A program made the position numbers and the translations under genes. A model generated the notes under the pieces. The model ran no database searches and was not told where the DNA came from. It saw only the letters and a list, made by a program, of their open reading frames with translations. 64,000 nucleotides of DNA from Callorhinchus milii (Eukaryota), in NCBI RefSeq assembly GCF_018977255.1, contig NW_024704843.1, positions 62,001-126,000 on the forward strand. The letters are read 5' to 3'. Positions 23,490 to 59,030 of this stretch are shown one piece after another. Numbering within the stretch: position 1 is the first letter of the stretch; each line of letters opens with the position of its first letter.

Positions 23490-24015
23490 TCCGACAGTTT
23501 GAGATAATCAGACAGTTTGAGATAAACAGACAGTTTAAGATGACCAGACAGTTTGAGATGACCAGACAGTTTGAGATGACCAGACAGTCTGAGATGACCA
23601 GGCAGTTTCAGCTGACCAAACAGTGCGAGATGACCAAACAATGTGAGGTGACCAGACAGTGTGTGATGACCAGACAGTGTGAGATGACCAGACAGTGTGA
23701 GATGACCAGACAGTGTGAGATGACTAGACAGTGTGAGATGACCAGACAGTGAGAGGTGACCAGACAGTGTGAGAGGTCCAGAGAGTGTGAGATGACCAGA
23801 GAGTGTGAGATGACCAGACAGTGTGAGATGACCAGACAGTGTGAGACGACCACACAGTGTGAGATGACCAGACAGTGTGAGATGACCAGACAGTGAGAGG
23901 TGACCAGACATTGTGAGAGGTCCAGAGAGTGTGAGATGACCAGACAGTGTGAGATGACCAGACCGTGTGAGATGACCAGAGAGTGTGAGATAACCAGTGA
24001 GTGTGAGATGACCAG
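23490..24015. repeat. 18-bp minisatellite (GAGATGACCAGACAGTGT)n, ~29 units
   Basis: Direct repeats; produces the MTRQCE and SGHLTL periodic ORFs. Confidence 0.95.
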
Positions 24016-25619: not shown

Positions 25620-27570
25620 TCAAGAGCGTGGAAGAAAGAAACTTGCCCAATATTTTGCTCTGCTCGGAATCCAATCTGGGACCTCGCGCTTGTGAGGCAA
25701 GTGCTTCAACCACTGAGCTTCAGGAATCCACGGATCTAAAACTGGGACTTTTGTGCTGATCAGAGATTGCCTGTGTGACGGAACACTGGACCAGAGAGAA
25801 TTACAAATCTAAATAGTGCAATTCCTCGATCAGCAAAGAAGCCGAGATCGTCACATTACTTTTAGACAAGGTGGTGGGTTCAAGTTGGGATCTGACATAA
25901 CAGCGATGACTGGTTCTCTGTGTAATCAAACCGAGTCCTCTCTCCCGTGTCAGGTGGACTTTAAATAATGTGTGCCACCACTTGTAAAAGGAGAACATTT
26001 TTTCCAATTTACTGGGTAATAATCCATGTGTTGATTGGAAAATCATCTTAAGAGAGACAGGTAGCAAAATAAAGAGTGTCTGATCAGAATCCCTATTACA
26101 ATCTGCTCACAGTTACTGTCAGCTGCCAGGATTCAGAAGTTGATAATCCTTGCAATTGAAGTAATAGCCTCTCACGACTTCGAGGCATCTCAAAGTGCTT
26201 CACGGATAATACTATGGCTTTAATTGACTGCATTTTGTTGTAGAAACGAGGCAACACATTGCACTTTGCAAAGTTCAACAAACAATTGTGAGTTCACTGA
26301 CCAAATTATTATTATTTGTAAAGAGATTAACAACCCAAGAATAGTGACCTGCTAACGGAATTACAACCGGTTTCCTTCTTACCTTGGTAAACAGGTTGGT
26401 GGAGTAAGGATATGTGAGTTGGAGAAGTGTACCACTGATATCCCTTCTAATTGAAACTTCACATCACATTTTTTCTTGTCAGTTTTTTGCACTTCAATTT
26501 CTTCTTCCCTCGTCCCGAAGGACTGTCCCTGCATTTCACTTGGCTGAGATTCCATCAGCAGCTCTCGCCATTCGGCTTCTCACTCAAGTGATGGTTTCAT
26601 GACTGGCGTGAACGCATCAATATACACAATAAAACATTCAAACTCATTACATTAGTTAATCACCAATCATTGTTTTGAACTCAGTAAATATGGGGAACAA
26701 ATATAATAAAGAATACTTCTAGAAGTGTGCTTCGAGCTGAATTTCTATAAGTTTTCCATGAGACCAAAGAAAAATGTTGTCAGCAGAAACCAAAAGAGGC
26801 CTCGTCTAAAGCAGTTTAGCAAAGGAGGCTTCGTCTTACGTAGTCCGCTCACAAATGAACGGTCAATTAACTTAACAACATATTCCCTGAAACGCTTACC
26901 GACGTCTAGAAGAGTTGAAAAGCGCTACATCAAAAGCAAGGATTATCATTATTATTATTGTAGGAGAAAAGAGAGAAATAGTATGAGTAAGAAAAAGTAC
27001 ATTGGGATTTTTTTAAGATCATAGCCGGTCTTTACCTCAAGTCAAAATAACCGCCTTTGCCACTGATCGCTTAATACAATCAATATCAAATATTTTCCAT
27101 CACAATCTTAAAAATATGACGGGATCCAACGTCCACAGACATTTGAAAGCGAGATTTCCAGATAAACACGACATTTTTTGCTTTGCTTTTCACTCCTAAA
27201 TGACCTTGCTGATATTTCAGATTATGCCACTTGTTCGGGATTCTTCCAACATATGAAACAACATAAATTTTTGGCCATAAAATGCACATTCACTCCACTG
27301 TGCAATATATTCTCTAAAACACTTTGCGACCTTTTAATTACTGAAGAAGGCACGATATGAATCGCAAGGGTTATAATAATAATAATAATAATAATAATCC
27401 TTGCATTTGATATAGCGCTTTTCGCGTCGGGAGGACGTCCCAAAGCGCTTCACAGAATATACTGTAAAGTGAATTGACTGTATATTTGTGGGCAAACGCG
27501 GCAGCCAATTGCGCACAGCAATGTCCCACAAACAGTCGTGGATTGAAAATGACCAATTTATTATTGTTTA
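25620..27570. mobile_element. Cluster of SINE fragments: head ~25620-25732 (-), diverged SINE ~26140-26295 (-), 3' piece ~26870-26960 (+), 5'-truncated copy 27372-27570 (-)
   Basis: Local similarity to the 13186-13497 copy; (AAT)n tail at 27372-27397. Confidence 0.7.
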
Positions 27571-27974
27571 ATAATATTTCATGAATAATGATTATTTTTG
27601 TTATAATAAGAGCATATTACACATAATGCACCTATAATATTCCAAATAACATACTAAGTTGCCCGATATTATTTCCGAAAAGTAATACCTAATTTGCTTT
27701 TAAAATAATGAATAATTTCTTCTTAAACCATCATCTCAGGGAGCGTGTTCCAAATACTTATTACTAACTGTCTGAAATAGTGTTTCCGCAGATATGCTTT
27801 GAATTGACCCCAAAACACACATTCTGACAAATACATGGAATGAAGCAATTGAAGATGATTCAGAGTCAGCGCTATGTCTCATACGATTCAGACATACATT
27901 AATATTGATTTGCTGTAAATGCAGAATATACAGTTAATATTATTGATTATTGATCTGTGCAGGTCAGAAGGAAT

Positions 27975-28050
27975 GTGACACGTCACTCCCCTCAGTCCTG
28001 GAGCTATTGGTCGATTCTCAAACCCCTGCCCCAGTGGCCCGCGTTAAATA
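27975..28050 (+). promoter_or_regulatory. Candidate VH promoter: GTGAC-AC-GTCAC inverted repeat (CRE-like), inverted CCAAT, TTAAATA
   Basis: Motifs at 27975-27986, 28006-28010 and 28044-28050, within 170 nt of the leader ATG. No ATGCAAAT octamer seen in this interval. Confidence 0.4.
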
Positions 28051-28141
28051 GCGGTCACTGGGGACTGAGTCCATCTGTCCGGCTGATCTCTGGCCCTCGG
28101 TTATTCGGCACAAGTTTCAGTTATGACAAGTTCCGAGAAAC

Positions 28142-28190
28142 ATGAGGTCCCTGATTTCTCTCAGTCTGCTGCTGGCTGTCTTCTTCTCCT
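28142..28190 (+). CDS. IGHV: IgH V leader exon (MRSLISLSLLLAVFFS + T)
   Basis: Hydrophobic signal peptide, GTAAGT donor at 28191, 116-nt intron, TTACAG acceptor. Confidence 0.92.
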
Positions 28191-28306
28191 GTAAGTGCTA
28201 TTATTCTGACATTGTCTCTGTTTCTCTGTCGGTGTTATTTTCTCTGCAGTGTCACAGAGACAGGAGATTTCACCATCATTCACCTTCGGTCCTTTATTCC
28301 TTACAG

Positions 28307-28618
28307 GTGTCCAGGCCGGTGAGGTGCTGACACAGCCGCCGACTCTCACCGGTAAAACCGGCCAGTCCCTGAGACTGACCTGCAGAACCAGCGGATTTAA
28401 TTACAACAGCTACTACTACTGTATGTACTGGTACCGGCAGCTTCCCGGGAAGCAGCGGGAAAAGCTCCTCACTTCTGACAAACACTCCAGCAACAGTTTC
28501 GAGTCCGGGGTTGGAAACCGCGTCACTGTCGTCAGAGAGAATTCCAATAACATCTTCGATCTGATCATCAAAAGCCCGAGAGTGGAGGACACCGCGACCT
28601 ACTACTGTGCAGCGGAGT
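28307..28618 (+). CDS. IGHV: IgH V exon, IgM-VH-derived with VHH-like FR2, unrearranged
   Basis: CVQA|GEVLTQPPTLTGKTGQSLRLTCRTSGFNYNSYYYCMYWYRQLPGKQREKLL...EDTATYYCAAES. Canonical Cys/Trp/YYC present; open frame. Confidence 0.95.
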
Positions 28619-28657
28619 CACAATGAGAGGAAACTGGGCTGAACTCCTACAAATACA
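28619..28657 (+). other. V 23-RSS: CACAATG - 23 nt - ACAAATACA
   Basis: Heptamer 28619-28625, spacer 28626-28648, nonamer 28649-28657. Confidence 0.93.
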
Positions 28658-29071
28658 CAGGGGGAGGAAAGGCAGCCCCTCCCATCCTAAACTGACTGAT
28701 GGACATCCATGTGGTCAATGCTGTATCTGCAGCCAAGTTTAAAGGAAAAGCTGAAAATGGATTTACTCTCACACTAAATCTTCACAGTGAATCGTTGTTT
28801 GATTGGGGTGAATGAATTCCTTATTTGTGCTGCATTATTCTGTGATTTCAGATGGTCAGTGACACTGTGCTGTTGAGGCGGGAAGGATTGCGATTGGAGA
28901 CTGACTATGTTACGGTTCACAATCATCCTTTTGTTACAAAGTGTTGGAAATAATTGCTTTCTGTGTCTGTGGATATCAAAACATTACTCTGTATCCTCTG
29001 TGTCATGTCAGAGGAGAATAGTCCTTTCAAGTGAATTTTGTCTGTCAGTGTGGAGCAAACATTGGGGGATC

Positions 29072-29149
29072 AGTATTTGTATGAGACTGTATCACTGTGT
29101 GAACTGTGGGTCACAATGCTACACACAGTTACCTCCTCATACAAAAATC
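29072..29149 (+). other. IgH D1 segment TGAACTGTGGGT (29100-29111) with 12-RSS and 22-RSS
   Basis: AGTATTTGT-12-CACTGTG | D | CACAATG-22-ACAAAAATC. A 12/22 D1 is the known arrangement in chondrichthyan IgM clusters. Confidence 0.92.
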
Positions 29150-29463
29150 CTAGAGAGAAAAATTGATAATCCCTGTCATCACTACAACATCCACAGCTCC
29201 CATATTAGTGCTACCGAACGTAGGTCACTCTCGGAAATAACCTGGTGTTTTAACAATTTAATTAAGGTTAATTTATATTACAGGACGATATTAAACAAGA
29301 ATGAGTTCTGCTGAGCTGCTTTAACACGAAACCAAATTCTCTGATGAACATAAGAATTTATTTTGACTTAAACATCACACGGGGCCTCACGAGAGAATAT
29401 GAACTGAGATCCAGTTCTTATCTCAAATTCCAAGTCAATGTTTGTTAGTCCGTCTTGTGCAGG

Positions 29464-29532
29464 AGTTTTTGTCATGTTGTGTATCACTGTGTATGTACCT
29501 GGACCACAGCATTAACTGCCAATACAAAAACC
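29464..29532 (+). other. IgH D2 segment TATGTACCTGGAC (29492-29504) with 12/12 RSS
   Basis: AGTTTTTGT-12-CACTGTG | D | CACAGCA-12-ACAAAAACC. Confidence 0.92.
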
Positions 29533-29869
29533 CTTCAACAACAAACCAGCTAATCTCTCTCACTACTCGCTTGTGTAGCACCCACTGAAATTGCGGGGAT
29601 TTGGTATTTCTAATATGTTGCTACACCCCGAGGATTTCACGAGATTTTAAACGACATAAAACATCGGATTTATTCTTCAATCTGTTGGTGAGAAGAAACC
29701 TGGTTTGGCACGAACACAGCAAACTGACAAAGACACAAACATTTAAAAGGTAAACACAGCGCCGGGCAATTGTTTTCAGAACATGACAGACACATATCGT
29801 GACCTATGTGTGTGTTGGAGAAACCAACATTTACAGTAATATTGTGTTTGTGTGCTCTGCCCACACAGC

Positions 29870-29890
29870 AGTTTTTGCAGTGAACAGCCC
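29870..29890 (+). other. Orphaned nonamer (AGTTTTTGC) plus first 12 spacer nt of the J 23-RSS
   Basis: Immediately abuts the (CAA)n tail of the inserted LINE; the rest of the spacer is at 31783-31793. Confidence 0.85.
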
Positions 29891-31777
29891 AACAACAACA
29901 GCAACAAGATTCCATTTATAAAGCGCCTTTCACGTCAGGAGGACGTCCCAAGGCGCTGCACAGTTGGGTCATGACCCGAGCAGGGGGGAAATGGTCAGGG
30001 GAGGGGAGAGAGCGAGGAGGGTGGAAATGGTCAGGGGAGGGAAGGGAGGGAGCGAGGAGGGGGGAGATAGTCGAGAGGGGAGCTGAAGGCACGGTCAAAG
30101 AGAAAGGTTTTGAGACCGGCCTTGAAGGAGGAAAGGGGGGAAGCAAGGCGAAGGCACTGGGGGATGGAGTTCCAGAGCCTGGCGGCTGAGAGGCTGAAGG
30201 CCCGACCACCGATGGTAGGGCTGTTGGGGCGGGGGACGTGGAGCAGACCGGAGCCAGAGGAACGGAGGGTACGGGCAGGTAGGTAGGGGGATAGTAGGTT
30301 GGAGAGGTAGGAGGGAGCAAGGCCGTGAATGGCCTTGTAGGTGAGGATGAGGATCTTGAAATCAATCCTCTGGGGGATGGGGAGCCAGTGGAGGCGAGCG
30401 AGGGTGGGAGTGATGTGGTCCCGAAGCCTAGTGCGGGACAGTACACGAGCTGCAGAGTTCTGAATGACCTGCAGCTTGTGGAGGGAGGTGGCGGGAAGGC
30501 CGGCGAGAAGAGAGTTCCCATAGTCCAGCCTTGAGGTGACAAAGGCGTGAACCAGGGTTTCAGCAGCGTGAGGGGTGAGGTAGTGCCGTAATCTGGCGAT
30601 GTTCCGGAGGTGATGGAAGGCGGTGCCATTTGTGGTGCGGATGTGAGGGAGAAAGGACAGCTCAGGGTCGAACAAAACGCCGAGGTTCCTGATTGGCTTT
30701 GCGAGGTGGAGAGTGCAGCCTTGGATGCTGATGGTGTCAGCGCCTGAGGTGCGGAGGCGCTGACGTGAGCCAATCAGGAGGGCCTCGGTTTTTNGCACGT
30801 TGAGCTGAAGAAAGTTGTCTCTCGTCCAGGACTCGATGTCGGACAGGCAGCTGTCAGGACATCGGGGGTCGTGGAGTTGAGAGTAGAGGAGGAAAGGTAG
30901 AGTTGGGTGTCATCCGCATACATGTGGAAGTTAACCCCATGTCTGCGGATGATGTCACCAAGGGGGAGCATATAGAGGGTGAAGAGGAGGGGACCAAGGA
31001 CAGAGCCCTGAGGGACACCACGTGAGACAGTGCGGGAGGTGGAGGAGAAGCCATTCGTCGAGACAAAATGAAGACGGTGAGAAAGGTACGACCTAAACCA
31101 TTCAAGGACAGTGCCTTGAAGGTTGAGGTGGGAGGACAAGCGGTGGAGTAGGATAGCGTGGTCGACCGTATCGAATGCTGCCGATAGGTCGAGGAGGACG
31201 AGGAGACAGAGGGAGCCCTGGTCACAGATGGTCAGGATATCATTGGTGACCTTGACCAGGGCAGTTTCTGTGCTATGGGCAGCACGGAAACCTGACTGAA
31301 GGGGTTCAAAAAGAGAATGGGTGGAAAGGAAAGAGCGCAGTTGGGAGGCGACAACACTTTCCAAGACTTGGAAGGGTCTTGTGGGAGGGAAGGGGTGGGT
31401 GGTGGGTGGAAGTTGGAGGGGAAGTGACCGCGGAGCGGATTCCCTTGGATTCAAGGAATTCCAGCATCTCCTCGCAGTGAAGGTTGGAGGAGATGACCTG
31501 CGCGGGGTGGCGGGGGGGACGGAGGAGTCGGGTTGTGGTGGAAAACAGTAGCCTGGGGTTGTTCTTCGCCTCCAGGATTATCCTGGAGTAGAAGGACGAC
31601 TTGGCCGAGGCTAGAGTGGAGCGGTAAATTTTGAGGAGATCCAGCCAGATTTGTCGGTGGACCGTTAGGCCAGATTTGACACAGGTGCGTTCAGCAGCCC
31701 GCACCTGGCTTTTCAGTGAGCGGAGGTGGGTGGTGTACCAGGGGGAGGAGCGGGAGTAGGAGACAGTGCGGTAAGTG
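29891..31777 (-). mobile_element. L2-clade LINE, 5'-truncated and internally deleted, inserted in the J RSS spacer (candidate TSD AGCCC)
   Basis: RT motifs [29 protein letters not shown] and MYADDTQLY; C-terminal HWLPIPQRIDFKIL. 3' tail (TTG)n at 29891-29907; frameshift near 30850. Confidence 0.95.
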
Positions 31778-31793
31778 AGCCCAGTGACTGTAG

Positions 31794-31854
31794 CACAGTG
31801 CCTGCCGCAGCCTTGACTACTGGGGACAAGGCACAGCGGTGACGGTGACTGACG
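31794..31854 (+). other. IGHJ: IgH J segment (31801-31854: CRSLDYWGQGTAVTVTD + G) with heptamer CACAGTG at 31794-31800
   Basis: WGxG motif; GTAAGA donor at 31855, phase 1. The nonamer position is occupied by LINE sequence (GACAGTGCG). Confidence 0.95.
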
Positions 31855-32269
31855 GTAAGAACAGACACTAACTCACTCACTTCAGTGAACGTGTCTCTTT
31901 ATATATTCGTTTTGTTCACTTTAACAGCTTGTTAATGTAATTAACTCCGTGTTACCGGCTATTTCACACTTTAATCCACCTTGAAAGTATTTATCTGTTA
32001 CTGCTTTCAAAAGCAACTGTTCCATTATGGGTTACTCTCTCAATATTTAGGTAATTGTTGGTGATATTTCTGGTGGTTTGTGAAGATGCAGCAGAGGTCA
32101 ATCTGATGGACTTTCTTATTGCGTTGACTGGCGGCTGCTGGGTTTCGGTGTTTAATTGTGCAAAAGTGTTTGAAACTGTGCCCATGCTTTGGGAATTAGG
32201 GCCAGAAATGTGGTGGGATGAGTGATAGGAATGTTATCTGATCGCTTCCAACAGCAGTTGAGAATAACT

Positions 32270-32590
32270 GTGTGGCGTCCTGTAGCTCAGTGGTTAGAGT
32301 ATTCGCCTTCCAAGCGAGAGACCTGGGTTCTATTCAAGGAAGGACGAAATCTTGGGAAGGTTTCCATTACAATTCCTGACAATAATCCCTCCAAAAAACA
32401 AAACAGTAATATAATAAATTAGTCATTTTCAATCACGACTGTTGGTGGGACACTGCTCTGCGCAATTGGCTGCCGCCTTTCACCCACAAATATGCAATCA
32501 ATTAACCTTACATTCCATTCTGTGAAGTCCTTTGAGACGTCAAAGAGATGCGAAAAACCCGACATCAAATGCAAGGATTATTATTATTAC
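32270..32590 (+). mobile_element. Diverged full-length tRNA-SINE in the J-C intron
   Basis: gtggcgtcctgtagctcagtggttagag head ... aaatgcaaggattattattattac tail. Confidence 0.8.
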
Positions 32591-34659
32591 GTATTTAAAT
32601 CCATTGTTTAATATAAGGAAATTGGTTGCGATTCAGAATGACTCGTATGCGGAGGGGATGACAGTGAGAATAAAGCGGTTTATATTGCAGGGATGTGATT
32701 GAGAATACAGCAGCTCAATCGACACCAATGTTACAGAAATAATAGTGAAGGTCATTATTTTATTATCAGCATTAATGTGTTGCTCACAATCTCATTCCTT
32801 CAGCTGCACCACATACATCGGTCTCGATTTTATTCAGCGACACATTAAGCTCAGACTTCATTTCATTTGATTTTAACAGCGATTGAGTGAACAGGACCTC
32901 GATTCCTCACAGTGTTCGGAGACACAAGGGGTCGTTGTTGATCTGTAACCATCAACTTCCTTTTTTACAATAAATGTTGCGCAGAAAAACACAGATATGT
33001 TCAATAAACACATGGTAAAAGTTTGCACAGCAGGCTGCAATGTAACATATCCAGCTGCAGTGCAAGAGCCTGCTGTTCAAACCTTACCATTTGTTCATTG
33101 AGATGTTTAACGCACAGCGACACTGATCAGTGATACCAAACTAATGAATTCAGAGAAGATCATCTCAAACTCCAGAGTCGGCAGAGATGACGGTGAAAGT
33201 GGCCGCTTCTCATTTGACTGTAGATATATAATTTAGTTATTCTGTGTAAGTGTTTGTGCTGCAGGGATTTATGACTGTGAGTTAAATTGCATCATATATA
33301 ATGCTATGTGTGTGATGTGGAAGGATAGTGTGTGAGCTGCTGTGCAGTGAGTGAAACCTTCAGTCTCTCAGAGAGAAAGAGAATATAGAGTAACGTGTGG
33401 GTTAATGAACGGAAACACTTTGTGTTTGAGACGTGAGAGATAGGGTTACGATTGACCCTCAGGCTGTGAGGAGACTGTGTTGTGCTGAAGTGTAAATTCC
33501 CGCAGAATTATGGATAATCGTCAAATTCGGTTTGATTTCTGAAAGAGGTTGACTCGAGTTCTGAAGAGGAACCGGTACTCTAAATTATAAGTAAATTTAA
33601 GATTATTACACACTTCCGCAAAATCTTAAATTAGAGATATAATGATCTCTCGTTGTTTATTAATAGTTGTTTATTGGGATCTCAGATGTGAACAAAATTT
33701 ATTGATCAATGACGATAAAATGGTCGTGGGTGCAGGAAAGAGGAAACAGATGCACATTTACCAGCAACAGTTTTGCAAAGTATTCTGCGCAGCGCTTTGC
33801 GAATTCTCGAAGATGTAATCAGGCGCTAAATGAAAGGCAAATAATATGATTATTTTATTCCGAAATATGAAAGTAAACGTGTTTTGCTGCTGCAATGCAA
33901 TGCAGCGCCATTGACAACAAATCCCAAGACAGCGACGTCTCTTTTTATTTAAACTTTTCGGTGCAGCTGTGTGACACAATTACTCGTAAATGTGGTTATT
34001 TCTGCGTCTGTATTTAGCGCTGTGCAGCAGCTGTTGCAGGTTCCGTAGGTCACATTCACCAATCAGACAGGATTCCCTGTGAGAGACTTGTGTTGAGCAC
34101 AACACTGATTAGAGTCCTTCATTCCTCATGTGAACACTGAATCTGCCCATTATATGATCTCTGCAGTTGTGTTGACAAAAGATTTAATAGGGACCAAAAT
34201 TCTTCAACAGTCAAACAAATATTTTCCGCCCTGAAATTATTCGGTCTATTCATCTCACAGTTTAGTCTGTAAAACGCTTTGAGATGTCTCGAAAATGTGA
34301 TAAGACACTATATCAAATGGATGAACTATTGCACAACAATGTAAGATGATCCACAGGTCTGAATATCATTCGATAGATATTTTTTGGTGAATCCAGTGGA
34401 CGATTTGGAAATTGAAGCAACATTTGAATTTCAGCTATTTTTTAAAAAATGACACACGACTTTAACTCTTAAAAGAGAGTTAATCGGAATAAGACCAGTG
34501 AACATTTTGGCCTGAAACGATTTCAAATTAACATTATAACCACAGTCTGTCGCTCCGTGTTTCAAAACTGAAGCTGGTCAGGAGGTGACTTTGAGTTGCT
34601 TCACAGTCGATGCGCAGTCACTGACACCAGGTTCACATACAGATAGCTCTACATTTATA

Positions 34660-34764
34660 TATCTATGTTTATTTATTTATTTATTTATTAATCCATTTAT
34701 CTATTTATCTATTAATCCATTTATCTATTAATTTATTAATTTATTCATTTGTTCATTTGTTCAT
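34660..34764. repeat. (TATT)/(CATT) microsatellite flanking the 34765-34970 gap
   Basis: Direct reading. Confidence 0.85.
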
Positions 34765-35569
34765 NNNNNNNNNNNNNNNNNNNNNNNNNNNNNNNNNNNN
34801 NNNNNNNNNNNNNNNNNNNNNNNNNNNNNNNNNNNNNNNNNNNNNNNNNNNNNNNNNNNNNNNNNNNNNNNNNNNNNNNNNNNNNNNNNNNNNNNNNNNN
34901 NNNNNNNNNNNNNNNNNNNNNNNNNNNNNNNNNNNNNNNNNNNNNNNNNNNNNNNNNNNNNNNNNNNNNNAGGCAGACAGTCAGGCAGATAAACACACAC
35001 ACAGAGAGGGGGAAAGGAAGTCGATGCTCTGCTGTGTAAATTAGCAATTTCTCTCTCATACAAAAGTCACACTTGAGCCAACATTATTGGGATACTAAAT
35101 TTAAACTGGCAATTTTTTTAACGTTGGAGCCAATTCAGGAGCTGCTCTACAAAGCGCACCCCTCACCGCGCGCTACAAGTGCACAGTGCAGCTCTGGCCA
35201 TACAAACGGTGATAAAGATTACAAATATATGAAGGCTACATTTCTCCTTAAACCGTTATGTATGAAAACCTTGGTCTCAGCACAAACTCCAGCTGGGATG
35301 CTTTGCTGGAACAAGTACGCACACAGACATGAACACACCAATAAAATAATAATCATTGCATTAGCTACAGTGCCTCTCACGGCGGAGATAGGCCACAAAG
35401 CGCATCACAGGATTGAATGTAAAGTGCGTTGACTGAATTTTGTGGCCAAAACGCCAACAGTCCGTTTCGCAAAGCAAATCCCCACAAACAGGCGTAGAGA
35501 GTTTGGCCGATTTTATTTGGGGGGATTGTTGACGAGGGCGCGGAAAACAGAAAGAGACGGAAAGACATA

Positions 35570-35760
35570 GTTAGAGAGAAAGAGAGAGAGAGAAAGTGTA
35601 TGCGTGAGTGTGTGGGGGGGGGGGGGGGGGAGAGAGAGAGAGACAGAGAGAGTGTGAGAGAGAGAGAAATTGCCATCTGTTTTCCAATACGTCATGGGAT
35701 CTTCATGCATACACACACACACACACACAAACACACACAAACACACACACACACAAACAG
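35570..35760. repeat. (GA)n, G-run (~35614-35630) and (CA)n microsatellite cluster
   Basis: Direct reading. Confidence 0.85.
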
Positions 35761-36174
35761 CCATACAGACAGGACCTTAATGGCCTAATGCTGTTGCCTT
35801 CATTTCCCGAGAGCTGCTTTTCTCGGAGATAAAGTGCAGATATGAACGGAATAGGAATCATTTCACGCGGTTCAGTTCGAAAGGAGAAGACCTAACGATT
35901 CTCCGTGACAAACAGGGAAAGGGGAATTGAAGAGTTGCCAACTCCAAGCTCAGCTTAGAGTTCAATGCAAAGTATCAGATAACACGATTGAGGAGATTGC
36001 AATGTTTATTTTTCTAAAGATCAATTTGAACTGGGAAGGTTGAAAGAGATAAGTGATTGAGAGGGAAGTATCCACATCATGGTTGAGATCAATGTCTGTT
36101 TTCATATAAATACCAATTACACCTAACGCAATTTTTTTTCAACGTAACATAACTTATTATTCAATGTATTTCAG

Positions 36175-36504
36175 GGAATGTACAACCGAAACCATTGCCC
36201 CCAGTTGTGTTCCTCACACAGCCTTCCCCTGGAGACATCAAAATACACAACCAGGCCACTGCTGTCTGCTCAATAAACAGCTTCCGTCCGGACAAACTCA
36301 GTGTGAAATGGCTGAAAGACTGGGAACCCATCACCTCAGGTGTTGTGACCTCTCCCTCGGCTAAAGAGGACAACGGGACATTCAGCAGCAGCAGCCGCCT
36401 GACGGTCCCCGCCAGAGAGTGGAGCACTGGCGCGGTTTACACCTGCCAGGTGTCCCATGAACCCACCCAGACCATCATTGTCAAGAACATCACCACCCCA
36501 ACAG
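36175..36504 (+). CDS. IGHM: First constant exon, Cmu2-like (C2a)
   Basis: TTTCAG acceptor; GNVQPKPLPPVVFLTQPS...ATAVCSINSFRPDKLSVKWLKD...SRLTVPAREW...VYTCQVSHE...KNITTPT; GTAGG donor; 330 nt, phase 1/1. The motifs match shark Cmu2, not Cmu1. Confidence 0.92.
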
Positions 36505-36584
36505 GTAGGAGGAACAGCAGCAGCTGGTACACATGGCAGCAACGTGGCTCTCAGTGTCCTTTGACATTTACACCGGAGGCCTGT

Positions 36585-36870
36585 AGCTCAGTGGTTAGAG
36601 CCCTGGCGTTGCAAGCGACAGACGTGGATTCGTTTCCCAGACAGAGCAAGATGTTGGGCACTTTTTTTACATCACTCGCCTCTGCTTATCCAGCAGTAAG
36701 TCGGGACCGGGTTGTCAGTGAGTTGGTGTATCTCCTGGGCGCCAATGGCTGCCTCGTTTCACCCACAGAGAAAAATTAGTTGACACGACAGCATTGCCTG
36801 TAAAGCACTTGGAGACGTCCCGAGGAATTGATGAGGCACTATATGGAACGCAGCGATAACTATAATCATT
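36585..36870 (+). mobile_element. tRNA-derived SINE (different body) between the two Cmu2-like exons
   Basis: ggcctgtagctcagtggttagag head; L2-like 3' end gcctgtaaagcacttggagacgtcccgagg. Confidence 0.7.
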
Positions 36871-37229
36871 AACTTTAAGGGTAGAACAATCAGCATCGTA
36901 GACATGGGCATCTCAGTTTTCTTCTCCAGGATATTTGAACACTGCCATCACAGAAAACCTTCTATGGTCTGATGGTATCACACTCATTTCCCGATTGCTG
37001 ATTTAGTGGAATATATCAGAAGCAATGAATGAGTAGGTCACATAATTTCAATCTTTCTGAAGGAAAAAAAGATTAGATTATCTTGACTAGGAAGATAGAA
37101 AGGTCAATGAGTGAGAAGTGTCCATATTGTGGCTGAGCTCAATGTTTTTTTTCAATATTGGTATAAACTTCACATAGCAATATGTAAGTCCATGGAGCAA
37201 AACATGACCTATCGTTTAATCTATTCCAG

Positions 37230-37550
37230 ATAATGTACCTAAGCCATCGCCGCCAGTTGTTATCCTCACACAAACTTCCCCTGAAGACATCACCAGGCAC
37301 AACCAGGCCACTGCTGTCTGCTTAGCATTTGCTTTTCATCCAGACATACTCCGGGTTAAATGGCTAAGAGACTGGCTGCCCATCACCTCAGGTGTTGTGA
37401 GTTCTCCCTCTGTTAAAGAAGACAACGTGACATTCAGCACCAGCAGCCGCCTGACTGTCCCCGCCAGAGAGTGGAGGAGTGGCGCGGTTTATACCTGCCA
37501 GGTTTCCCATGAACCCACCCACACCATCATTGTCAAGAACATCACCTCAG
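37230..37550 (+). CDS. IGHM: Second constant exon, Cmu2-like duplicate (C2b)
   Basis: TTCCAG acceptor; DNVPKPSPPVVILTQTSPEDITRHNQATAVCLAFAFHPDILRVKWLRD...VYTCQVSHEPTHTIIVKNITS; GTGGGA donor; 321 nt. Clearly paralogous to C2a. Confidence 0.9.
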
Positions 37551-38226
37551 GTGGGAAACACGGCAATAGTTGGTACACATGGCAAGAACGTCACTCTCAG
37601 TTTCCTTTCAAATGTCCTCTGGTGAGAGCTCTATTGATACATTGCTTTCAGCCCCATTTGGATATTTCAATGGGAACAACACACAAGCGAGCTTATTCCC
37701 AGTTTTATTGATCTTTACGGCATGAGGAAATCGGGCCCCAATTCTCACGCAGTATTCAGTGGGTAGCAACAAAGGCCATGTTTCTGATCTGCTGCTCATG
37801 AGGAGCTCAGGCATCACTCACAGGTCCACGGGATTGTGGCTGTTATGCTCATATTCCACCCGCTTCCTCAACATCTACTCCCACTGAACTTTCTGATCAC
37901 AATTTGTATCAACCAGGGCAGATAGACATATAAACACAGAGTCACAGCTCATCCATCATATGTGTTACATCATGAGCGGTTGTCCGTCGGAGGGAATTGG
38001 AAATCAATAGGCCAAATATCACGCAATGCTTCAGGCAGCTTGAAAGCTCAACTTTCCAGTAAACTTTTCCATCAACGATTGATAATTGTATTAGGAAACA
38101 GCAATCTGTGGTCAGATGAGCCAGAATGTGAGAATGTTCATGGTCGGTCATTGCTTAACTTGACCCAATATGAAATTCTGGAAATGGACTGTTCTTTGTC
38201 TTTCTAAGTTTCTTTTACTTTTCTAG

Positions 38227-38538
38227 AATGCGAGGATCCCTCTGGAGGTGTCAAGATCTATTTCCTGCCACCTGCACAGCGACAGGTTTTGATGGATTCC
38301 TCTGTAACGCTAACATGTGTAGTGGTTAATGCACCACTTCACGTCAACGTGACTTGGACACAAGGAAATACACATTTGCAGTCTGGATATGGGAAAACTT
38401 CTGCCACTGAGCCTCAGAAAGTGATCAGTAAATTAAACATTTCTGTATTAGACTGGAACAGTGGTAAAGAATACTTCTGTGTAGCCAGCCATGATGATAT
38501 ACCATCTCCCATCAGAGAGAAGACGTTTAAGAAGACAG
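38227..38538 (+). CDS. IGHM: Cmu3 exon
   Basis: ECEDPSGGVKIYFLPPAQRQVLMDSSVTLTCVVVNAP...EYFCVASHDDIPSPIREKTFKKT; CTAG acceptor, GTGAG donor; 312 nt. Confidence 0.93.
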
Positions 38539-38795
38539 GTGAGGAGTGAAAAATAATTTACGTGTTTATTATAATTCCAGAATATAGGAAAACCACTGGG
38601 TGCAAATAATAAATTGCTTTCGAGAGATTTCAATCAACATCCGTGTTCCCATTCGCACCTGCAATTACAAACAGCTGAACGCAGTCTGAACAGAAAAACA
38701 CATCAATCTCAGCTTATTCTGCAGTCTCTTATGCTTTAAAGTTTTCTCTGATTGACCACTTTCAGTGTATTGACTCGATTGTGTTCTTCCAACAG

Positions 38796-39187
38796 TGGAG
38801 CACGTGAAACAACCTTCAGTGTATCTCCTCCTCCCGTCGGCAGAAGAATTGTCTGCTCAGCAGTCTGTCACCCTCACCTGCCTGGTGAAGGACTTCGCTC
38901 CCAAAGAGATCTTTGTGCAGTGGACTGAGAATGACCAGGTGATTGATTACAGTAACTACAAGAACACTGATGTGATGGCAGACAGTGCAGAGCGCAACTA
39001 CTCCATGTACAGCATGTTGTCCATCTCAGCCGGAGACTGGGACAGAGGATACTCCTACTCCTGTGTGGTCGGACATGAAACTTTCCCAATGAAGACTCTG
39101 ACCAGATCCGTTAATAAATCCAGCGGTAAACCGTGTTTTGTAAATATTTCCCTTGTCCTGATGGACACCGTGAATGCCTGTCAGTGA
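38796..39187 (+). CDS. IGHM: Cmu4 exon plus secretory tailpiece (internal TM donor after 39125)
   Basis: VEHVKQPSVYLLLPSAEEL...SCVVGHETFPMKTLTRSVNKSS|GKPCFVNISLVLMDTVNACQ*; N-glycan site and penultimate Cys typical of a mu tail. Confidence 0.95.
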
Positions 39188-39276
39188 GTGTCCCTCAATA
39201 CCATGTTGCCTATTTTCTTATGCACCCGCCTCCCTCCCATTGCATTGACTGTTTGTTTGCATGAACAAGTAACACA

Positions 39277-39282
39277 AATAAA
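39277..39282 (+). terminator. Polyadenylation signal of the secretory transcript (AATAAA)
   Basis: 90 nt after the tailpiece stop. Confidence 0.75.
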
Positions 39283-39759
39283 GATTATAGTTGCATTGAT
39301 GTGTCAGGTACAGAGAGGATGATTTGCAATTAATTTCACTGTCAACTTCCAAAGCAAGGACAAGTACATCCATTTTTGATGGGATGTTAGCATCAAGTTA
39401 ATAGGACAGTCAGGTTGGTTTGTACACTCTTAATCATGGTGATGGGTTTGCAGGTGTCAGGCACCCGTGTGACCCAAAAAAAGTTAATAGTCCGAAATTA
39501 TTCTACTTTACTTGCTACAGCCCAACTCAGACTGGATTTTATTTGCAGTTTGATTCAGAATCTAACAGTGAAGCTACACCTGTTCCTTTTCAACATATTT
39601 TCTTTCCCACCGAATAGCATCGCATTCCACGTGTAATAACATCGCGGACGTAAACTCCGGCTTTTTATTGCTACATTTCCATTAAAAGTATATACTTCTC
39701 ACACTGAAACTGATCCGAATACAGGAAAATGTTCATTTAAACATAAGCTTAGCCATACA

Positions 39760-40410
39760 TGGACATTGTAACCAAATGCATTCATTCAAACTCACATCCA
39801 CACATACTCACATACAACATCATATCCATCCAGGCCCACACACACTCACGTGTCCACCCATGTTCACAAACACACACATATACACACACAGAGACACAGA
39901 CACACAAACTCACATCCTCCCAGGGGCCACACACACATACACTCACACATCCCCGCAGGTCCACACATGCAGACACTTGCAGACGCAAACTCACGTCCAC
40001 CCAGTCCCACACACACTCACACACACTCACACATCCACCCTGGCTCACACAAACTCACTTATATCCACATCCAAACAATCCCTACACATTTTCGCACACA
40101 CACTTAATGGGCCGACACATTCACACTGATTTCCTTTAAGGCCCACAGATACTCACACACACCCACTTCCATCCAGGCCCCCGTAAGCTCACACTCACCC
40201 AGGCCCACGCACACTTAAACACACTCACATACCCATATTTACAATTAATTACACAGACAACTTGACACATTTACATCCACCAAGGCAGACACTCACACAC
40301 GCTTACATCAACCCATGTCGCCACACAAATACATACATGCAGGAACACGCACATATACACATATATACACATCCACGAATGACCACACACACAGACTCAC
40401 ACTCACCCAA
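39760..40410. repeat. CA-rich intronic tract (paralogous copies at ~44090-44750, 51620-52260, 55930-56620)
   Basis: Low-complexity CA/CACT words shared between the modules. Confidence 0.85.
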
Positions 40411-41594
40411 GCCAATACAAAATCAATAGCGCTATGGATGAACCTTTTTAAATTTAATCCTCATTTACTTTAGTTAATTTACAGAGACGTTTGTGCCGGT
40501 TCCTACAATAATATTAACGATTGTGAAATCGACATGGCTATCCATGATAAAAGAGATGATGGTCTAATAGGGTTGTTAGACACAGTCAGGAATAACTTTG
40601 GCAATTGTATAAGATTACAGACCCCTTAGCTGAGTTGGCCGAAAAGTGGAATTGCAGTTCAATATCAGTAACTGCTTCTGTTATAAGTGACGAGTGGAAA
40701 ACCTGGAGTAATAGTCGATGGGAGCGCATATCAAATGGAGTAAAAATGGACCCTGTGTTTTTTGTTGGGCAATCGACTGTTAATTAAATATAAATTTACC
40801 AGGATTATGGGTGGTGTACAGTGTGCGGTTCTGGGCATTTTATTAAACAAAGGAAATAAGAGCTCCTGAGAGGGTTTTGGGAAGTTTCACAAAGGTCAAT
40901 AGAGATGGTACCTGTGACTGACGTTACTGTGTTGAGGAATAGCTTCACATAGCGCGGCTGCTCTCGAAAGGAAAGAGCAGGTAAATCAGAAAGGGAAGAT
41001 CAGCAAATACAAGTTTTCAAATGTATTTAAGTTTTGAAAGGCTGATACAGTGAAAAGCGATAGTATCCATAAAAATGGGTATAAGAGGTCCAGTAAAATC
41101 ACTGTAAAATATAATGGCAAAGTCGATTTTTATATCGAGAATTGTTTAGAATAGAGAAACCTTCACCTCAGCATTATAATGTAAAGGAATTTCAAATATA
41201 TTTGAACAGAGACGATGTGAACTTGCAATAGAGCAGAAAGAAAGGTGGAATTGAAGGATTGGAGTAGATCTGTCCTTTTACTACCAACAGAGTCTCAATG
41301 GGAGAACTTCCTTCTTTCTGCATTTCCACAAATTGAGCTTTCCCAAAGTGTTCCTCAAATTCTTCCGCGGAATCTATATTGAGAGGAATATACGATAAAA
41401 TAATGTTTTTCTTCATTTGCCTTTGAATTAAAAGTTTGGAAGAAATGGTATGAAGTTCAGTGTTGTTTAATAGACGGAGAGAGCCCTTAATTATCTCGGA
41501 ATCTCTAAATACGTTAATAATATAACAGGAAAAATAAGAAATGTCTGAGGTGTCAATGCGCTCTGAAGATTTTTCCCTTTTTATAACCTCACAG

Positions 41595-41725
41595 ATTTGC
41601 CAAACGAGATGATGCTGGAAGGATTTCAAGAAGTTCAGTGTGACAACCTCTGGCCTACTGCTTCCACCTTCATCATCCTCTTCTTCCTTAACATTTTCTA
41701 CAGCGCTACCGTAACTCTTTTTAAG
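41595..41725 (+). CDS. IGHM: TM1 exon, module a ([44 protein letters not shown])
   Basis: ACAG acceptor, GTGAG donor, 131 nt; mu-type TAST-F...FYS.TVT transmembrane motif. Confidence 0.92.
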
Positions 41726-41854
41726 GTGAGGAGAGTAAATGCATTGAGGCCACGATGTCGTGCAACAGCTGCTGTTAAATATTCGGTGCATGGAAAGGCT
41801 AATAGTGAAGCTCATTGCAACCACTCTGTTGGCAAACTCAAACTCTACCTACAG

Positions 41855-41890
41855 GCCAAGATTCTTGTGACTGGGCTGTGTATAGGGTGA
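41855..41890 (+). CDS. IGHM: Probable TM2 exon, module a ([11 protein letters not shown])
   Basis: CTACAG acceptor 129 nt after TM1; the same small ORF is conserved in all four TM modules. Confidence 0.6.
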
Positions 41891-42054
41891 TCCTAATATC
41901 CCATCTCCCTTGCACACCCTATCACACCTGGCATATGCTCACCTGCTATAGACACAGGCAAGGTGCAAGGATTACTGTCTGTGTCAGCCCCAGCAGACAA
42001 ATACAAATTCACACAGAATCAGTTGGACCCTTGTGTATCCGTGTGTGTGCATAA

Positions 42055-42285
42055 TAATGATAATAATAATACTCCTTGCATTTGATATAGCTCTTTTCAC
42101 TTCGGGAGGACGTCACCAAGCGCTTCACAGAACATACTGTAATGTGAATTGAGTGTATATTTGTGGGCGAACGCGGCAGCCGATTGCGCACAGCAATGTC
42201 ACACAAACAGTCATGGATTCAAGATGATCAATATTTTTTTGTTTGTTTTTTTGAGGGATTATTATGAGGCGTATGTTTGTATGTT
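42055..42285 (-). mobile_element. 5'-truncated SINE (duplicate at ~53900-54125)
   Basis: Matches the SINE 3' half, with an (AAT)n-like tail. Confidence 0.8.
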
Positions 42286-43376
42286 TGTGTGGGTTTACCT
42301 GTTTGGATTGATATACACTTATAAACATAACCTTAAATATCATGACATCTTTATTTTTATTTTCCAGGTAAAATGAATTCATTAAGATCAGCTTCAACGA
42401 TGTGTCCCGTCCGTTTGTGCTTAACAACAAGCGTTGTGTGAAAGATTACGCGCTGCTTTTTTCACTCATTGTACAAATCACTTAAATTAAACATTGTATT
42501 GTGCAACTACTTGAATTTTAGTGGCTTTTGTTATTGTTAGTTTATTTTACAAATGTGCCTTTAGGTAACAATAACTGAAGTTGTTACTGTTACGCCTCTC
42601 TGATATTCTCTATTTGCTGTTTCCCATTTTTTCGTGTAAAGAAACAGAAAGTTAGTGGCTGAGATAATTTGTCCTCTTATTTTAATCTGAAGCTGAATTT
42701 TTGATTCTGCTCCGGTTTCATATTATCTCCAGATTCTGTCTGTTGTTTGCCAGAAGCATCAATAAAAATATTACAAATTCAATGATCTGTTTGTTTCCTC
42801 TTTCCTGTTCCTTTTGTGTCAATTGTGCCTTGCCGTTGCTTTCCAAATTATTCTGATTCCCAGTAACTCAGCATTAAACAAAAGCTGTTGAATTTAATGT
42901 CAAACTTCAGTTGCAGCTTTGCTGAGAACACTAAAGGCGATGATAGTTCCGCTTGAGATGGTTCTTCGCTCCAGTGAACAGCAGCTTTTTCCTTCCCATA
43001 TTGATCAGCCCCTCACCAAGATACAGCTTCAGACACATGACTATTCCAATATAGTAACATGCAGCTCTGTGTTAGAGTATTTATAGCACAATGTGAGAGC
43101 GCAATCTGTTTTATACATTGACAGAGCTTTATCTCCTGCCTGTGCTGAGCTGGACAATCTGACCAGGGCAGCACCTCAATTGGAGACCATAAAGCCCAAA
43201 TTCCTGCTGCGACGTTGGCCCATACACCTCTTCACAGGTCATACTGTGAAAATCATGGGGACGTCCTGCTGGTGTGAGAGACACTGAACCAAACACAGTG
43301 ATACTTATCATTGTTATTGATAACGACATAAACCTCACGGGCTGCAATACAATAGTATTTTGGATCTAATAGGCCT

Positions 43377-43486
43377 AAACATTCCCACTGAAGACCCTGA
43401 CCAGAAAGGTTAATAAATCTCGCGGAAAATCGAGTGTTGTAAACATTTCCCTTGTCCTGAAGGACACCGTCAATGCCTGTCAATGA
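43377..43486 (+). pseudogene. IGHM: Remnant Cmu4 3' end plus secretory tail, module b ([33 protein letters not shown])
   Basis: Homologous to ~39075-39187. No upstream Cmu4 found; the internal GT donor is changed to GA and AATAAA is degraded. Confidence 0.85.
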
Positions 43487-45445
43487 GTGTCTCTCAATAC
43501 CATTTTTCTTTATCTTTTAGGCATGCACCTCCCTAACATTGCATTGACTGTTTGGTTTCATGACAAAGTAACTCATATAGAGATTACAGTTGCACTGATG
43601 AGTCAGCTACAGCGGGCATGATTTACAAATAATTACACCGACAACTTCTATAATAAGGAGAGATACAACCTTTCTTTCAGGCGATTTGAACATCAATTTA
43701 ATAGAACTATCAGATTGGTATGTGAGCTATTAAGCAGTTTGATGGGTTAACACGTGTCAGAAACTGGGTTGATCAAAAAAAGGCGCTAATGCTCCCAAAT
43801 TAATCTACATTAATTGCTACCACCCAATCTAGTACTGGATTTTATTTGCAGTTTCATTTAGAATTGCACAAGTCAGCTACACCTGTTCCTTTCCATGATA
43901 CTTTCATTTCCACCGAATAGCATCGCAATCCGCATGCAACAGCATCTCTGCTGTAAGCAGCGACCTTTTATACTACATTTCCTTTAAAAGTAAATACTTC
44001 TTACACAGAACTGTTCCGGGTACTGGAAAATGTTCACTTAAACACACGCTTAGCCGTACTTTTACATTGTAAGTAAACGCATTCATTCACACTCACATCC
44101 ACACACCCTCACACACACAATCATGTCGACCGACACCCACAATCATTCACATGTCCACCCAGGTTCACAAACACACAGACACACACAAACACAGACACAC
44201 AAACTCACATCCACCCAGGCTCACACACTCACACATCCACCTAGGATCACACAAACTCGCACATACTCGCACCCAAACAAGTACTCACACACTCCCGCAC
44301 ACACAATTACAGGGGCCAACACATACTCACACTTACATCCATTAAGGCCGAGACACTCACACAAATAGGCTTCCACCCAGTTCCATACAAACTCACACGC
44401 AACCAGGCCGACTCACACTTACTTACACGCACACACCCAGCATCCCACACCTACACATTCACATCCACCAAGGCTCCCACACAATTATACATACTGAATT
44501 CCATCCAGGCTCACACACACTGTCACATAAGAAATTCCATGCAGGCCCACACACTGTCACCGAAATCCGTACACACTCAAACACACTCAAATCCACCCAG
44601 GTTCACACACAACTGCACACATACTCACGTACACTCACACTCAACAAGGACCATACACATTCGCACACACCCACAAAAACCCAGATTCCCTCGCATCCAT
44701 CAATGCCCACATACACTCACAAACCACTCACGCTCACCCAGGCCAACACACTCAATATCGCTCTGGAAGAATCCTGTTACACTTAATCCTGAGTTACTTT
44801 AGTTGATTTACACAGACGGTTTTGCCGGATACTCCACTGCTTTACTATAATATGAACGGTTTTCAAATCGACATGTTACTATTTATAGAATTATTGATGA
44901 TAGCATAATAGGAGTGTGGGTCACAGTCAGGAGCAACATGGGCAATTGCTTAAAATTACAGATCTTTTAGCTCAATTGGAATTGCACTTGTTGATTAAAT
45001 CAGCAGGAAAACCTTCTGTTTCAGGGCAGTGTGGAATATTTGGATCATAGGTCGATAGACCATATTTCAAAAGGTCAATTAAATATGAATATGAATGTCA
45101 ATTAAGTATGAAGTTAGTAGGATTCTGGGTAGAGTACAGATTGCGGTTCTGGGCATTTTATTAAACAGAGGATATACGAGCAGCTGAGAGGATTTTTGGG
45201 AGATTCACAAAGATCACTAAAGATGACGCCTGTGATTGACGTTACAGTGATGAGGATCCGCTTCAAACATTGTGGCTGCTCTCGAAAAAGAGACGGTAAA
45301 AGAGAAAGGGAAGATAAGCAAATACAATCTTTCAAATTTATTAATTTTTGAAAGAATGATGCAGTGAAAGGCGACACAAGCATATAAAACATCCAGGAAA
45401 ATCACCGTGAAATATAAAAGCTCAGTCGAATTTTATACCGAGAAC

Positions 45446-45600
45446 ATAAGAACATAACAATTAGGAGAAGGATTAGGCCATTCGGCCCCACGAGCCTGCC
45501 CCGCCATTTGATAAGATCATGGTTGATCTTCAGACTTAACTGTAATAACCTGCCCTATCCCCATATCCCCTAATTCCTCTATTGTTAAAAATCTATCAGT
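45446..45600 (-). mobile_element. CR1 3' terminal fragment (duplicate at ~57311-57470)
   Basis: agaacataagaacataa tail followed by ggccattcggccccacgagcctgc. Confidence 0.75.
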
Positions 45601-46031
45601 TTCAGCCTTGTTCATCATTTCAATATCAAAATGTAAAGGAATTCTAAATGGTATTTGAACAGTGACGATGTGAACTTGCAATAGAACAGACAGGAAGGTG
45701 GAATTGGAGCATTGGAGTAGATCTGTCCTTTTACGACGAGCACAGTCCCAATGGGAGCATTTCCTTCCTTATGTATTTCCTCAAATTTTTGACAAGTGTT
45801 CCACAGATTCTTCTCTAAATTCTATAATTGAGAGGAACAAACAATGAAACAATTGTTTTCTTTATTTCTCTTCCTATTAAAAGTTTGGAAGAATCTGCAT
45901 ATGTTTCTGTGCAGCTTAACAAAGGGATTGACTATGAAACTGAAAATACATTAATAATTCAACAGGAAAAATAAGAATTGTCTCAGGATTCATTTCGCTC
46001 TGAAGATATTTGCCCGTATTTGTCCTCACAG

Positions 46032-46162
46032 CTTTCCCAATCGAGATAATTCTGGAAAGTTTTCAAGCAGTTCAATGTGACAGCCTCTGGCCTACTGCTT
46101 CCAACTACATCATTTTCTTCTTCCTGAATATTTTCTACTACCCCACCGTCACTCTACTTGAG
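46032..46162 (+). CDS. IGHM: Diverged TM1 exon, module b (AFPIEIILESFQAVQCDSLWPTASNYIIFFFLNIFYYPTVTLLE); TM2-like at 46292-46327 (ATILVTGLCVG*)
   Basis: Intact CACAG acceptor and GTGAG donor, 131 nt, open frame; paralog of 41595-41725. Functionality unknown. Confidence 0.7.
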
Positions 46163-47123
46163 GTGAGGAGAGTAAATGCATTGACGCCATGATGTGGTGT
46201 AACAGCTGCTTTCAAATACTTGGTCCATGGGAATCCTGATAGTGATGCTCATTGCAACCACTCTGGTGCGAATCTCAACCTGCACCTACAGGCAACGATC
46301 CTTGTGACTGGGCTGTGTGTAGGGTGATCAAAATATCCTATCACCCTTACACAGCCTATCACACCTGGCATATGCTCACCTCCTATGGACATGGGCAAGG
46401 GGCAATGGTTATTTAAAGATTTAGTGTATCTCTGAGTTATTGTGGACAATATGAAGCATGTCGAAGGCTTTCCGTGGAATGTTTGCGAATCCAGAAATTG
46501 CAACAGTTAACAGCCATTTATTTAAAGTCAGTCTTGGATCAGTTCCTTGTATCAAGTACAGGCAACTGGCGGCAGTATTTCTACTGATATCAAAGATTTG
46601 CCAAATACATCAAATTTCCAATTGTTACGTAAATAAAATAAATCTCTACCATTTTGTAATTCGGCCCATGAACCCTTTCCTTATTAAGGAGAATCATCCC
46701 AGTACGACTCTTCCTTTAACTCACGACTATGTGCAGGCCTTTAGTGTACAAATCCAAGAACATTTGCAGCATGTGATGGAAATCTCGGAAGAAAAGTGTT
46801 CTGCCACAAAAGAAGGTTGTTCATCACTGAGATGCCACAGCAGCACAGACTATGGCATGATATAGCTCCTTAGAAGACAAACAGAATGTTGGGCGACAAC
46901 CTGAACCAGTTTAGGCCCAGATACTCAGAAAGCATCATCAAGATGCACATATGTTTTTCAGGCTGCACCTGTTCAATACTGAGTTTCCAAGGTGAAAGCG
47001 CTGGACAAGAGACAGCACAGAGATCGATGACGCTCATTCCCACAATCTGAATGATGTTCTAATATATGTTATGATGCATGTTTTCCCGCTTGACTGTGTG
47101 AGTGTGTGTTGGAAAGGGAGATT

Positions 47124-47154
<31 letters not shown>

Positions 47155-58991: not shown

Positions 58992-59030
<39 letters not shown>

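Follow-up and report, generated by a model that had tools for sequence, protein, structure and literature searches.

Does an immunoglobulin heavy-chain (IgH) cluster of Callorhinchus milii in which J is followed by an exon other than CH1 encode an antibody without light chains, and is the copy under study a working gene? The question is raised by a stretch of 64,000 nucleotides (contig NW_024704843.1 of assembly GCF_018977255.1, positions 62,001 to 126,000 of the forward strand), which is referred to as the window. Positions 28142-42376 of the window are occupied by one cartilaginous-fish IgH cluster. It consists of a leader, a variable (V), two diversity (D1 and D2) and one joining (J) segment, two Cmu2-like exons (C2a and C2b), Cmu3, Cmu4 and the transmembrane exons TM1 and TM2 (Table 1). 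With a probability of roughly 80%, this cluster is a member of a multi-copy holocephalan family of IgM-type heavy-chain-only genes, of which this copy is probably crippled by a long interspersed nuclear element (LINE) in the recombination signal of J.

The exon map was obtained by direct reading and by a combined check of splicing and translation. AG/GT borders are present at every exon and all introns are of the GT..AG type. The translation of J-C2a-C2b-C3-C4 is free of stop codons, and the reading frames of the secreted and the membrane form are both open. The leader is nearly identical to the leaders of C. milii and Hydrolagus IgM; a TTAAATA motif is located ~95 bp before the leader ATG. 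The splice from J to C2a is in frame (phase 1 to 1) and independent of the assembly gap at 34765-34970. The first constant exon after J is of the Cmu2 type, so that the Cmu1 with its light-chain cysteine, which follows J in conventional IgM, is not encountered at this position. C2a has a proline-rich N-terminus. C2a and C2b contain two cysteines each, whereas conventional Cmu1 has an extra cysteine in 'LLPYCGQ'. The original prediction, according to which C2a has the two intradomain cysteines only and none for a light chain, agrees with this reading. Cmu3, Cmu4, the secretory tail and the TM exons are all of the IgM type, as judged from the domain tree and the splice/translation check. Within Cmu4, an internal donor for the membrane form is present after 39125, and an AATAAA is found at 39277. 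TM2 had initially been placed at 41855-41890. This candidate was rejected, as the canonical VK* exon with a strong acceptor was found at 42368-42376.

To identify the constant domains, 58 C domains were placed in a maximum-likelihood tree. Apart from the four exons of the window, nine IgM chains from two holocephalans and several sharks supplied Cmu1-4, and three species supplied IgW C1-C6; IgNAR domains were left out. C2a and C2b are positioned inside the holocephalan Cmu2 clade (support values 98/92) and inside the overall Cmu2 clade (97/91). The Cmu1 clade is separate (99/95) and contains neither C2a nor C2b. The other two exons, C3 and C4, group with Cmu3 and Cmu4, respectively. At the DNA level, the segment 36018-36576 aligns with 37075-37622 (76% identity over 566 bp), intron flanks included. 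Identity amounts to 82% in the exons and to 65-74% in the intron flanks, and the comparison of C2a with C2b yields a dN/dS of 0.37 at a dS of 0.34. C2a and C2b are the products of a tandem duplication of a genomic unit. Since the exons are better conserved than their flanks and dN/dS is 0.37, both have been kept by selection. Judged from these values, the duplication is old. A Cmu2-like C2a followed by a second Cmu2-like exon had been predicted, together with a tandem duplication visible in homologous intron flanks (36526-36565 versus 37572-37612, offset ~1050). Both exons are now found in the holocephalan Cmu2 clade, and the flanks lie within the larger DNA match. The domain phylogeny that had been proposed as a check places C2a outside Cmu1, with IgW but not IgNAR in the tree.

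An unfiltered hidden Markov model (HMM) for C domains was run against all six frames of 28000-42500. It detected the four constant exons with E-values from 1e-29 to 1e-38, and the next best match had an E-value of 1.6. Three CH1 domains from C. milii and Hydrolagus, used as tblastn queries with E-values up to 1000, yielded only noise outside the four constant exons. In agreement with the prediction for 31855-36174, no CH1 exon was found in the readable part of this interval by the HMM and the CH1 tblastn searches. The predicted IgM-derived cluster without CH1 and with a duplicated Cmu2 exon is thereby confirmed for the readable sequence by exon map, tree, HMM and tblastn. No deposited complementary DNA (cDNA) that joins V-J to C2a was returned by the protein-database search, which yielded C. 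milii models of the Ensembl type and cDNAs of conventional IgM only, and no CH1-less sequence of the ratfish. In the C. milii gene models P0012 and P0013, J runs straight into a Cmu2-type domain. Among P0012, P0013 and P0049, some seem to be germline-joined, with V, D and J contiguous. They show one Cmu2, or J leading directly to Cmu4, which hints at further architectural variants in the family.

The V domain differs from conventional VH in framework region 2 (FR2). In the alignment, FR2 reads WYRQLPGKQREKLL compared with WVRQVPGKGLEWLL in conventional C. milii and Hydrolagus VH. V37 is changed to Y, G44 to Q, L45 to R and W47 to K, i.e. the core of FR2 has QREK against GLEW. The changed positions (Kabat 37, 44, 45 and 47) are the contacts to the light-chain variable domain (VL), and camelid VHH is defined by the same four; their replacement lends independent support to the predicted cluster type. 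Compared with holocephalan VH of the conventional kind, V shows 68-72% identity, and the closest solved structures are VH/VHH. A single clade (100/99), distinct from conventional VH, unites ten C. milii V genes with this type of FR2, the V of the window among them. Within this clade the window V is grouped into a subfamily of six (98/97), five of which carry an extra cysteine in a lengthened complementarity-determining region 1 (CDR1). In the window V, CDR1 is longer by two residues and contains the extra cysteine (YYYCMYW). An in-frame cysteine is also present at the 5' end of J (CRSLDYW), one frame of D1 reads NCG and one frame of D2 reads CTW. The CDR1 cysteine could form a bond to the cysteine of J or to that of the respective D1 or D2 frame, and a CDR1-CDR3 disulfide may reasonably be assumed from these motifs.

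Scanning of the window for recombination signal sequences (RSS) gave the signals of V, D1 and D2. The signal of J is split by the LINE. When 29870-29890 is joined to 31783-31800, the result is AGTTTTTGC, 23 bp and CACAGTG directly before J. As the joined flanks restore a signal of 9 + 23 + 7, the site of LINE insertion was the 23-bp spacer of the J signal. With its flanks rejoined, the cluster has the standard shark IgM pattern of V-23, 12-D1-22, 12-D2-12 and J-23. The LINE has a canonical, conserved 3' tail that ends in (TTG)n at 29891, and its open frame runs to ~31800. Both junctions show the 5-bp target-site duplication AGCCC (the last 5 bp of 29870-29890). At nonamer distance from the J heptamer, the present sequence matches the consensus at two of nine positions, and the scan for RSS and J motifs revealed neither a second J nor any other usable J signal in the window. 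The RAG recombinase requires heptamer and nonamer at a spacing of 12 or 23 bp. The LINE parts the two elements; therefore normal joining of D2 to J should fail or be rare at best. This copy is probably not a working antibody gene and would be unable to rearrange normally. Because all exons are intact, the inactivation is probably recent or polymorphic.

Table 1. Positions of the cluster elements in the window, with strand and characteristics.
Element	Position	Strand	Characteristics
L1	28142-28190	+	leader exon 1, MRSLISLSLLLAVFFS + 1 nt, donor GT; read directly
V exon	28307-28618	+	VH-derived; Pfam V-set E 2.8e-16
V recombination signal	28619-28657	+	CACAATG - 23 - ACAAATACA; RSS scan
D1	29100-29111 (with signals 29072-29149)	+	TGAACTGTGGGT; 5' RSS-12, 3' RSS-22
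D2	29492-29504 (with signals 29464-29532)	+	TATGTACCTGGAC; RSS-12 on both sides
Displaced nonamer of the J signal, AGTTTTTGC	29870-29878	+	followed by the first 12 bp of the spacer to 29890
LINE fragment	29891-31782	-	5'-truncated, 1.9 kb; RVT_1 E 5e-26
Remainder of the J signal	31783-31800	+	last 11 bp of the spacer, heptamer CACAGTG at 31794-31800
J	31801-31854	+	CRSLDYWGQGTAVTVTD; donor GT at 31855-31856 (corrected position)
Assembly gap, 206 N	34765-34970		entirely intronic (J-C2a intron); distance from the J donor 2.9 kb, to the C2a acceptor 1.2 kb
C2a	36175-36504	+	first constant exon, Cmu2-type; C1-set E 1.7e-21; corrected end 36504
C2b	37230-37550	+	second Cmu2-type exon; C1-set E 3e-19
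C3 (Cmu3)	38227-38538	+	starts ECEDPSGG, one hinge-like Cys; C1-set
C4 (Cmu4)	38796-39187	+	secretory tail GKPCFVNISLVLMDTVNACQ*; C1-set
TM1	41595-41725	+	splice/translation check
TM2, coding part	42368-42376	+	GTAAAATGA = VK*, strong polypyrimidine acceptor in front

A Cmu1 exon concealed in the gap of the J-C2a intron would turn the gene into a conventional, light-chain-pairing IgM with five constant domains. The window contains five runs of N, and their odd, non-round sizes suggest that they are measured estimates. The length of this gap is an estimate only, and the 1.2 kb between gap and C2a is a plausible size for an intron. However, 206 bp is shorter than any constant exon of the cluster (312-392 bp), and the gap has simple repeats of the kind that breaks assemblies on both sides. 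On the left, an AT-rich tandem repeat (34653-34758, detected by Tandem Repeats Finder, TRF) ends within 6 bases of the gap, and the right flank is of low complexity; no exon frame crosses the gap. Furthermore, the VL-contact residues are lost from V, J is connected to Cmu2 in related gene models of C. milii and the cluster type of the ratfish, which is fully described, is without CH1 (PMC3149040). A hidden Cmu1 is thus highly improbable. The second Cmu2 exon would be an assembly artefact if two haplotypes or paralogues had been stacked in tandem, and the window does hold an 11.8-kb repeat of 97.6% identity with a gap at its junction. For C2a and C2b this is practically negligible. The two exons are located in uninterrupted sequence and are too divergent (82% identity, dS 0.34), the intron between them carries its own tRNA-like insert of the type of a short interspersed nuclear element (SINE), and the same architecture has been published for the ratfish (PMC3149040). 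C2a might also serve as a substitute for CH1, as it is a C1-set domain in the CH1 position, and the chain would then still pair non-covalently with a light chain. With no extra cysteine in C2a, a constraint on C2a of the same kind as on C2b that has left it Cmu2-like, and residues 37, 44, 45 and 47 of FR2 now polar or charged as in camelid VHH, such pairing is very unlikely.

The cluster could also be fully working, the LINE being specific to a haplotype or to the assembly, or recombination taking place despite it. All exons are open, the splice sites are intact, the signals of V, D1 and D2 are good and C2a and C2b are under purifying selection, all of which fits a functional gene. It is nevertheless unlikely, given the clean junctions of the LINE, its canonical 3' tail and its target-site duplication, the match at two of nine consensus positions only and the lack of a second J in the window. 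The preferred reading, a heavy-chain-only cluster with a J signal disrupted by the LINE, has to be weighed against several points of its own. C2a and C2b are unpaired in the tree and scattered among conventional Cmu2 of C. milii with weak internal support (82/68, 94/86), so that a common origin with the duplication in the ratfish gets no support. The gap of 206 N, with its merely estimated length, could in principle hide an exon, and the join across it is unproven. Possibly only one haplotype carries the LINE insertion, and rare recombination can proceed from a heptamer without a nonamer. The immunoglobulin octamer (ATGCAAAT, at most one mismatch) is absent within 640 bp upstream of the ATG (27500-28141), except for ATTTGCTT at 27692. 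Finally, a light-chain-free protein and its secretion without a light chain are predicted from the gene sequence.

From the exon anatomy, domain identities, FR2 changes and recombination signals observed here, we infer light-chain-free secretion, the CDR1-CDR3 disulfide and polymer formation for this cluster type. In an intact member, V, D1, D2 and J would be joined by RAG according to the usual shark pattern (23 / 12-22 / 12-12 / 23). J would be spliced directly to C2a, followed by C2b, Cmu3 and Cmu4. The resulting chain, being without Cmu1, would have neither the light-chain cysteine nor the CH1 that is retained by chaperones, and could for this reason leave the cell without a light chain. 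Its V domain would be adapted to stand alone through the changes in the former VL-contact residues. The IgM tailpiece is kept with its penultimate cysteine and the NIS glycosylation site, and has an extra cysteine in GKPC; the chains with this retained tailpiece may still polymerise. In the secretory tail at 39126-39137, GKPCFVNIS is found in this copy compared with GKPSF in all retrieved C. milii relatives. Tentatively, the heavy-chain-only IgM of chimaeras might form light-chain-free polymers in which up to ten or more single-domain sites are braced by disulfides, although this format is rather doubtful. We know of no other heavy-chain-only antibody of a polymeric, disulfide-braced single-domain format; part of it may be contained in the 2022 fish paper mentioned below. 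If the polymeric format is correct, the VHH-like changes in FR2 would represent a solution reached independently for the third time at these four positions.

Downstream, the 3' half of the cluster occurs a second time. In a self-comparison of the window, 37570-49315 was found again at 49416-61180 (97.6% identity, 11.8 kb). The start of the second copy corresponds to a point 19 bp beyond the end of C2b and is preceded by a gap of 30 N (49316-49345) and 67 unrelated bases. These 67 bp between gap and copy have no match elsewhere in the window. The second copy contains Cmu3, Cmu4 and the TM exons (C3' at 50072-50383, C4' from 50641), and no V-D-J-C2 is visible upstream of them. Its secretory tail has two frame-shifting 1-bp deletions in T runs at 50980 and 50990 (39136 and 39147 in the first copy), which may be either changes of a pseudogene or sequencing errors in homopolymers. 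Likewise, either a true segmental duplication or an assembly artefact may account for the 11.8-kb repeat itself. Behind each copy lies a relic of a Cmu4 3' end and TM region (43377-46405 and 55223-58276, ~79% identical). In these relics, probably the remnants of an older cluster, a TM1-like frame is open but divergent.

Several other elements are present in the window. A family of tRNA-derived, SINE-like elements occurs at 494-770, 13186-13503, 27373-27569, 32276-32347, ~36577-36870, 42051-42270 and 62003-62286. The J-C2a and C2a-C2b introns contain one of them each; the head of the element at 32276 is recognized by ARAGORN as tRNA-Gly-like. Their tails share the motif GGGACGTCC…GACGTGAAA(A/G)GCGCT with the LINE. 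Upstream of the Ig cluster, two intronless open reading frames (ORFs) encode G protein-coupled receptors (GPCRs) of the rhodopsin family (4020-4970 on the plus strand and 15336-16319 on the minus strand; 7tm_1 E-values 5e-12 and 1e-17, respectively). Long minisatellite or satellite arrays at 7795-8413, 11143-12565, 23490-24015 and 62392-63520 appear as self-similar ladders in a self-blastn comparison.

The translated proteins of the region have their top matches in C. milii immunoglobulin models (83-92% identity), and the IgM of Hydrolagus colliei and of sharks comes next (42-50%). No protein identical over the full length is present among the database matches to these translations. The Cmu3 of the C. 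milii model P0001 is identical to Cmu3 of the window. With an identical Cmu3 but no database protein identical over the whole length, this copy appears to be a paralogue or allele of the annotated C. milii Ig genes.

Genes for heavy-chain-only antibodies of fish are reportedly the subject of a paper by Anumukonda et al. from 2022 (Eur J Immunol 52:247). A later paper, which uses a 'single-domain Hydrolagus IgM V', cites Anumukonda et al. (PMC12227049, 2025). An IgM cluster of the ratfish with CH1 lost and CH2 duplicated is described in a review from 2011 (PMC3149040), citing Rast et al. 1998; according to this review a heavy-chain dimer without light chains is the likely product, the protein being unexamined. 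Architecture and heavy-chain-only reading are already known and not new, since both have been published. The original prediction had correctly judged this architecture not to be new, naming the ratfish as the species in which it was described. Its 'third independent route' to light-chain-free antibodies, put forward as an inference of its own, is a view already published (PMC3149040; reportedly also Anumukonda et al. 2022). Taken together, the predicted cluster type stands, whereas the originality of the third route and the position of TM2 do not, and the LINE and the 3' duplication had been overlooked. As descriptions of the class date back to 1998, no new question is opened. The window provides confirmation at the base-pair level that a chimaera genome carries the IgM cluster type without CH1 and with a duplicated CH2. 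For annotation, it is advisable to mark this copy as probably unable to rearrange, with the gene end at TM2 (42376) and the 3' half repeated downstream. The V of this cluster type is altered at the interface positions of camel nanobodies, which is useful for the mining of single-domain binder scaffolds and for the study of convergent antibody evolution.

Among known systems, the CH1-less IgM cluster of the ratfish H. colliei shares with the window cluster the derivation from IgM, the absence of CH1 and the second CH2-like exon, as described in PMC3149040. The V of single-domain type and the holocephalan host are also common to both. They differ in species and in the LINE in the J signal, found here, and the C2 duplications were compared by published description only. 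Conventional IgM clusters of holocephalans and sharks (V-D1-D2-J-Cmu1-4) have the same layout and the same pattern of RSS spacers. Between the window cluster and conventional C. milii IgM, the identity of Cmu2, Cmu3, Cmu4, tailpiece and TM exons is 77-84%. In contrast to conventional IgM, the window cluster has no Cmu1 in the readable sequence, two Cmu2 exons, a replaced FR2 interface and an extra CDR1 cysteine.

Elasmobranch IgNAR is likewise a heavy-chain-only antibody of cartilaginous fish that is encoded in clusters. The constant domains of the window, on the other hand, belong to the Cmu clades, apart from IgW C1-C6 (in the tree without IgNAR sequences), and the cluster has a VH-type V with two D segments instead of a NAR-type V with three. 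A CDR1-CDR3 disulfide is found in some IgNAR types and in camel VHH, and the extra CDR1 cysteine could pair likewise here. Camelid heavy-chain IgG has no CH1 in the protein and carries substitutions at positions 37, 44, 45 and 47 of FR2, which are directed here towards Y, Q, R and K. In camelids the CH1 exon is present in the gene and skipped through a splice-site mutation, whereas it is absent from the readable gene here. Furthermore, the window cluster is derived from IgM, not IgG, is organized as a cluster instead of a translocon locus and is of independent origin. The resemblance to the camelid heavy-chain antibody is functional and convergent only.

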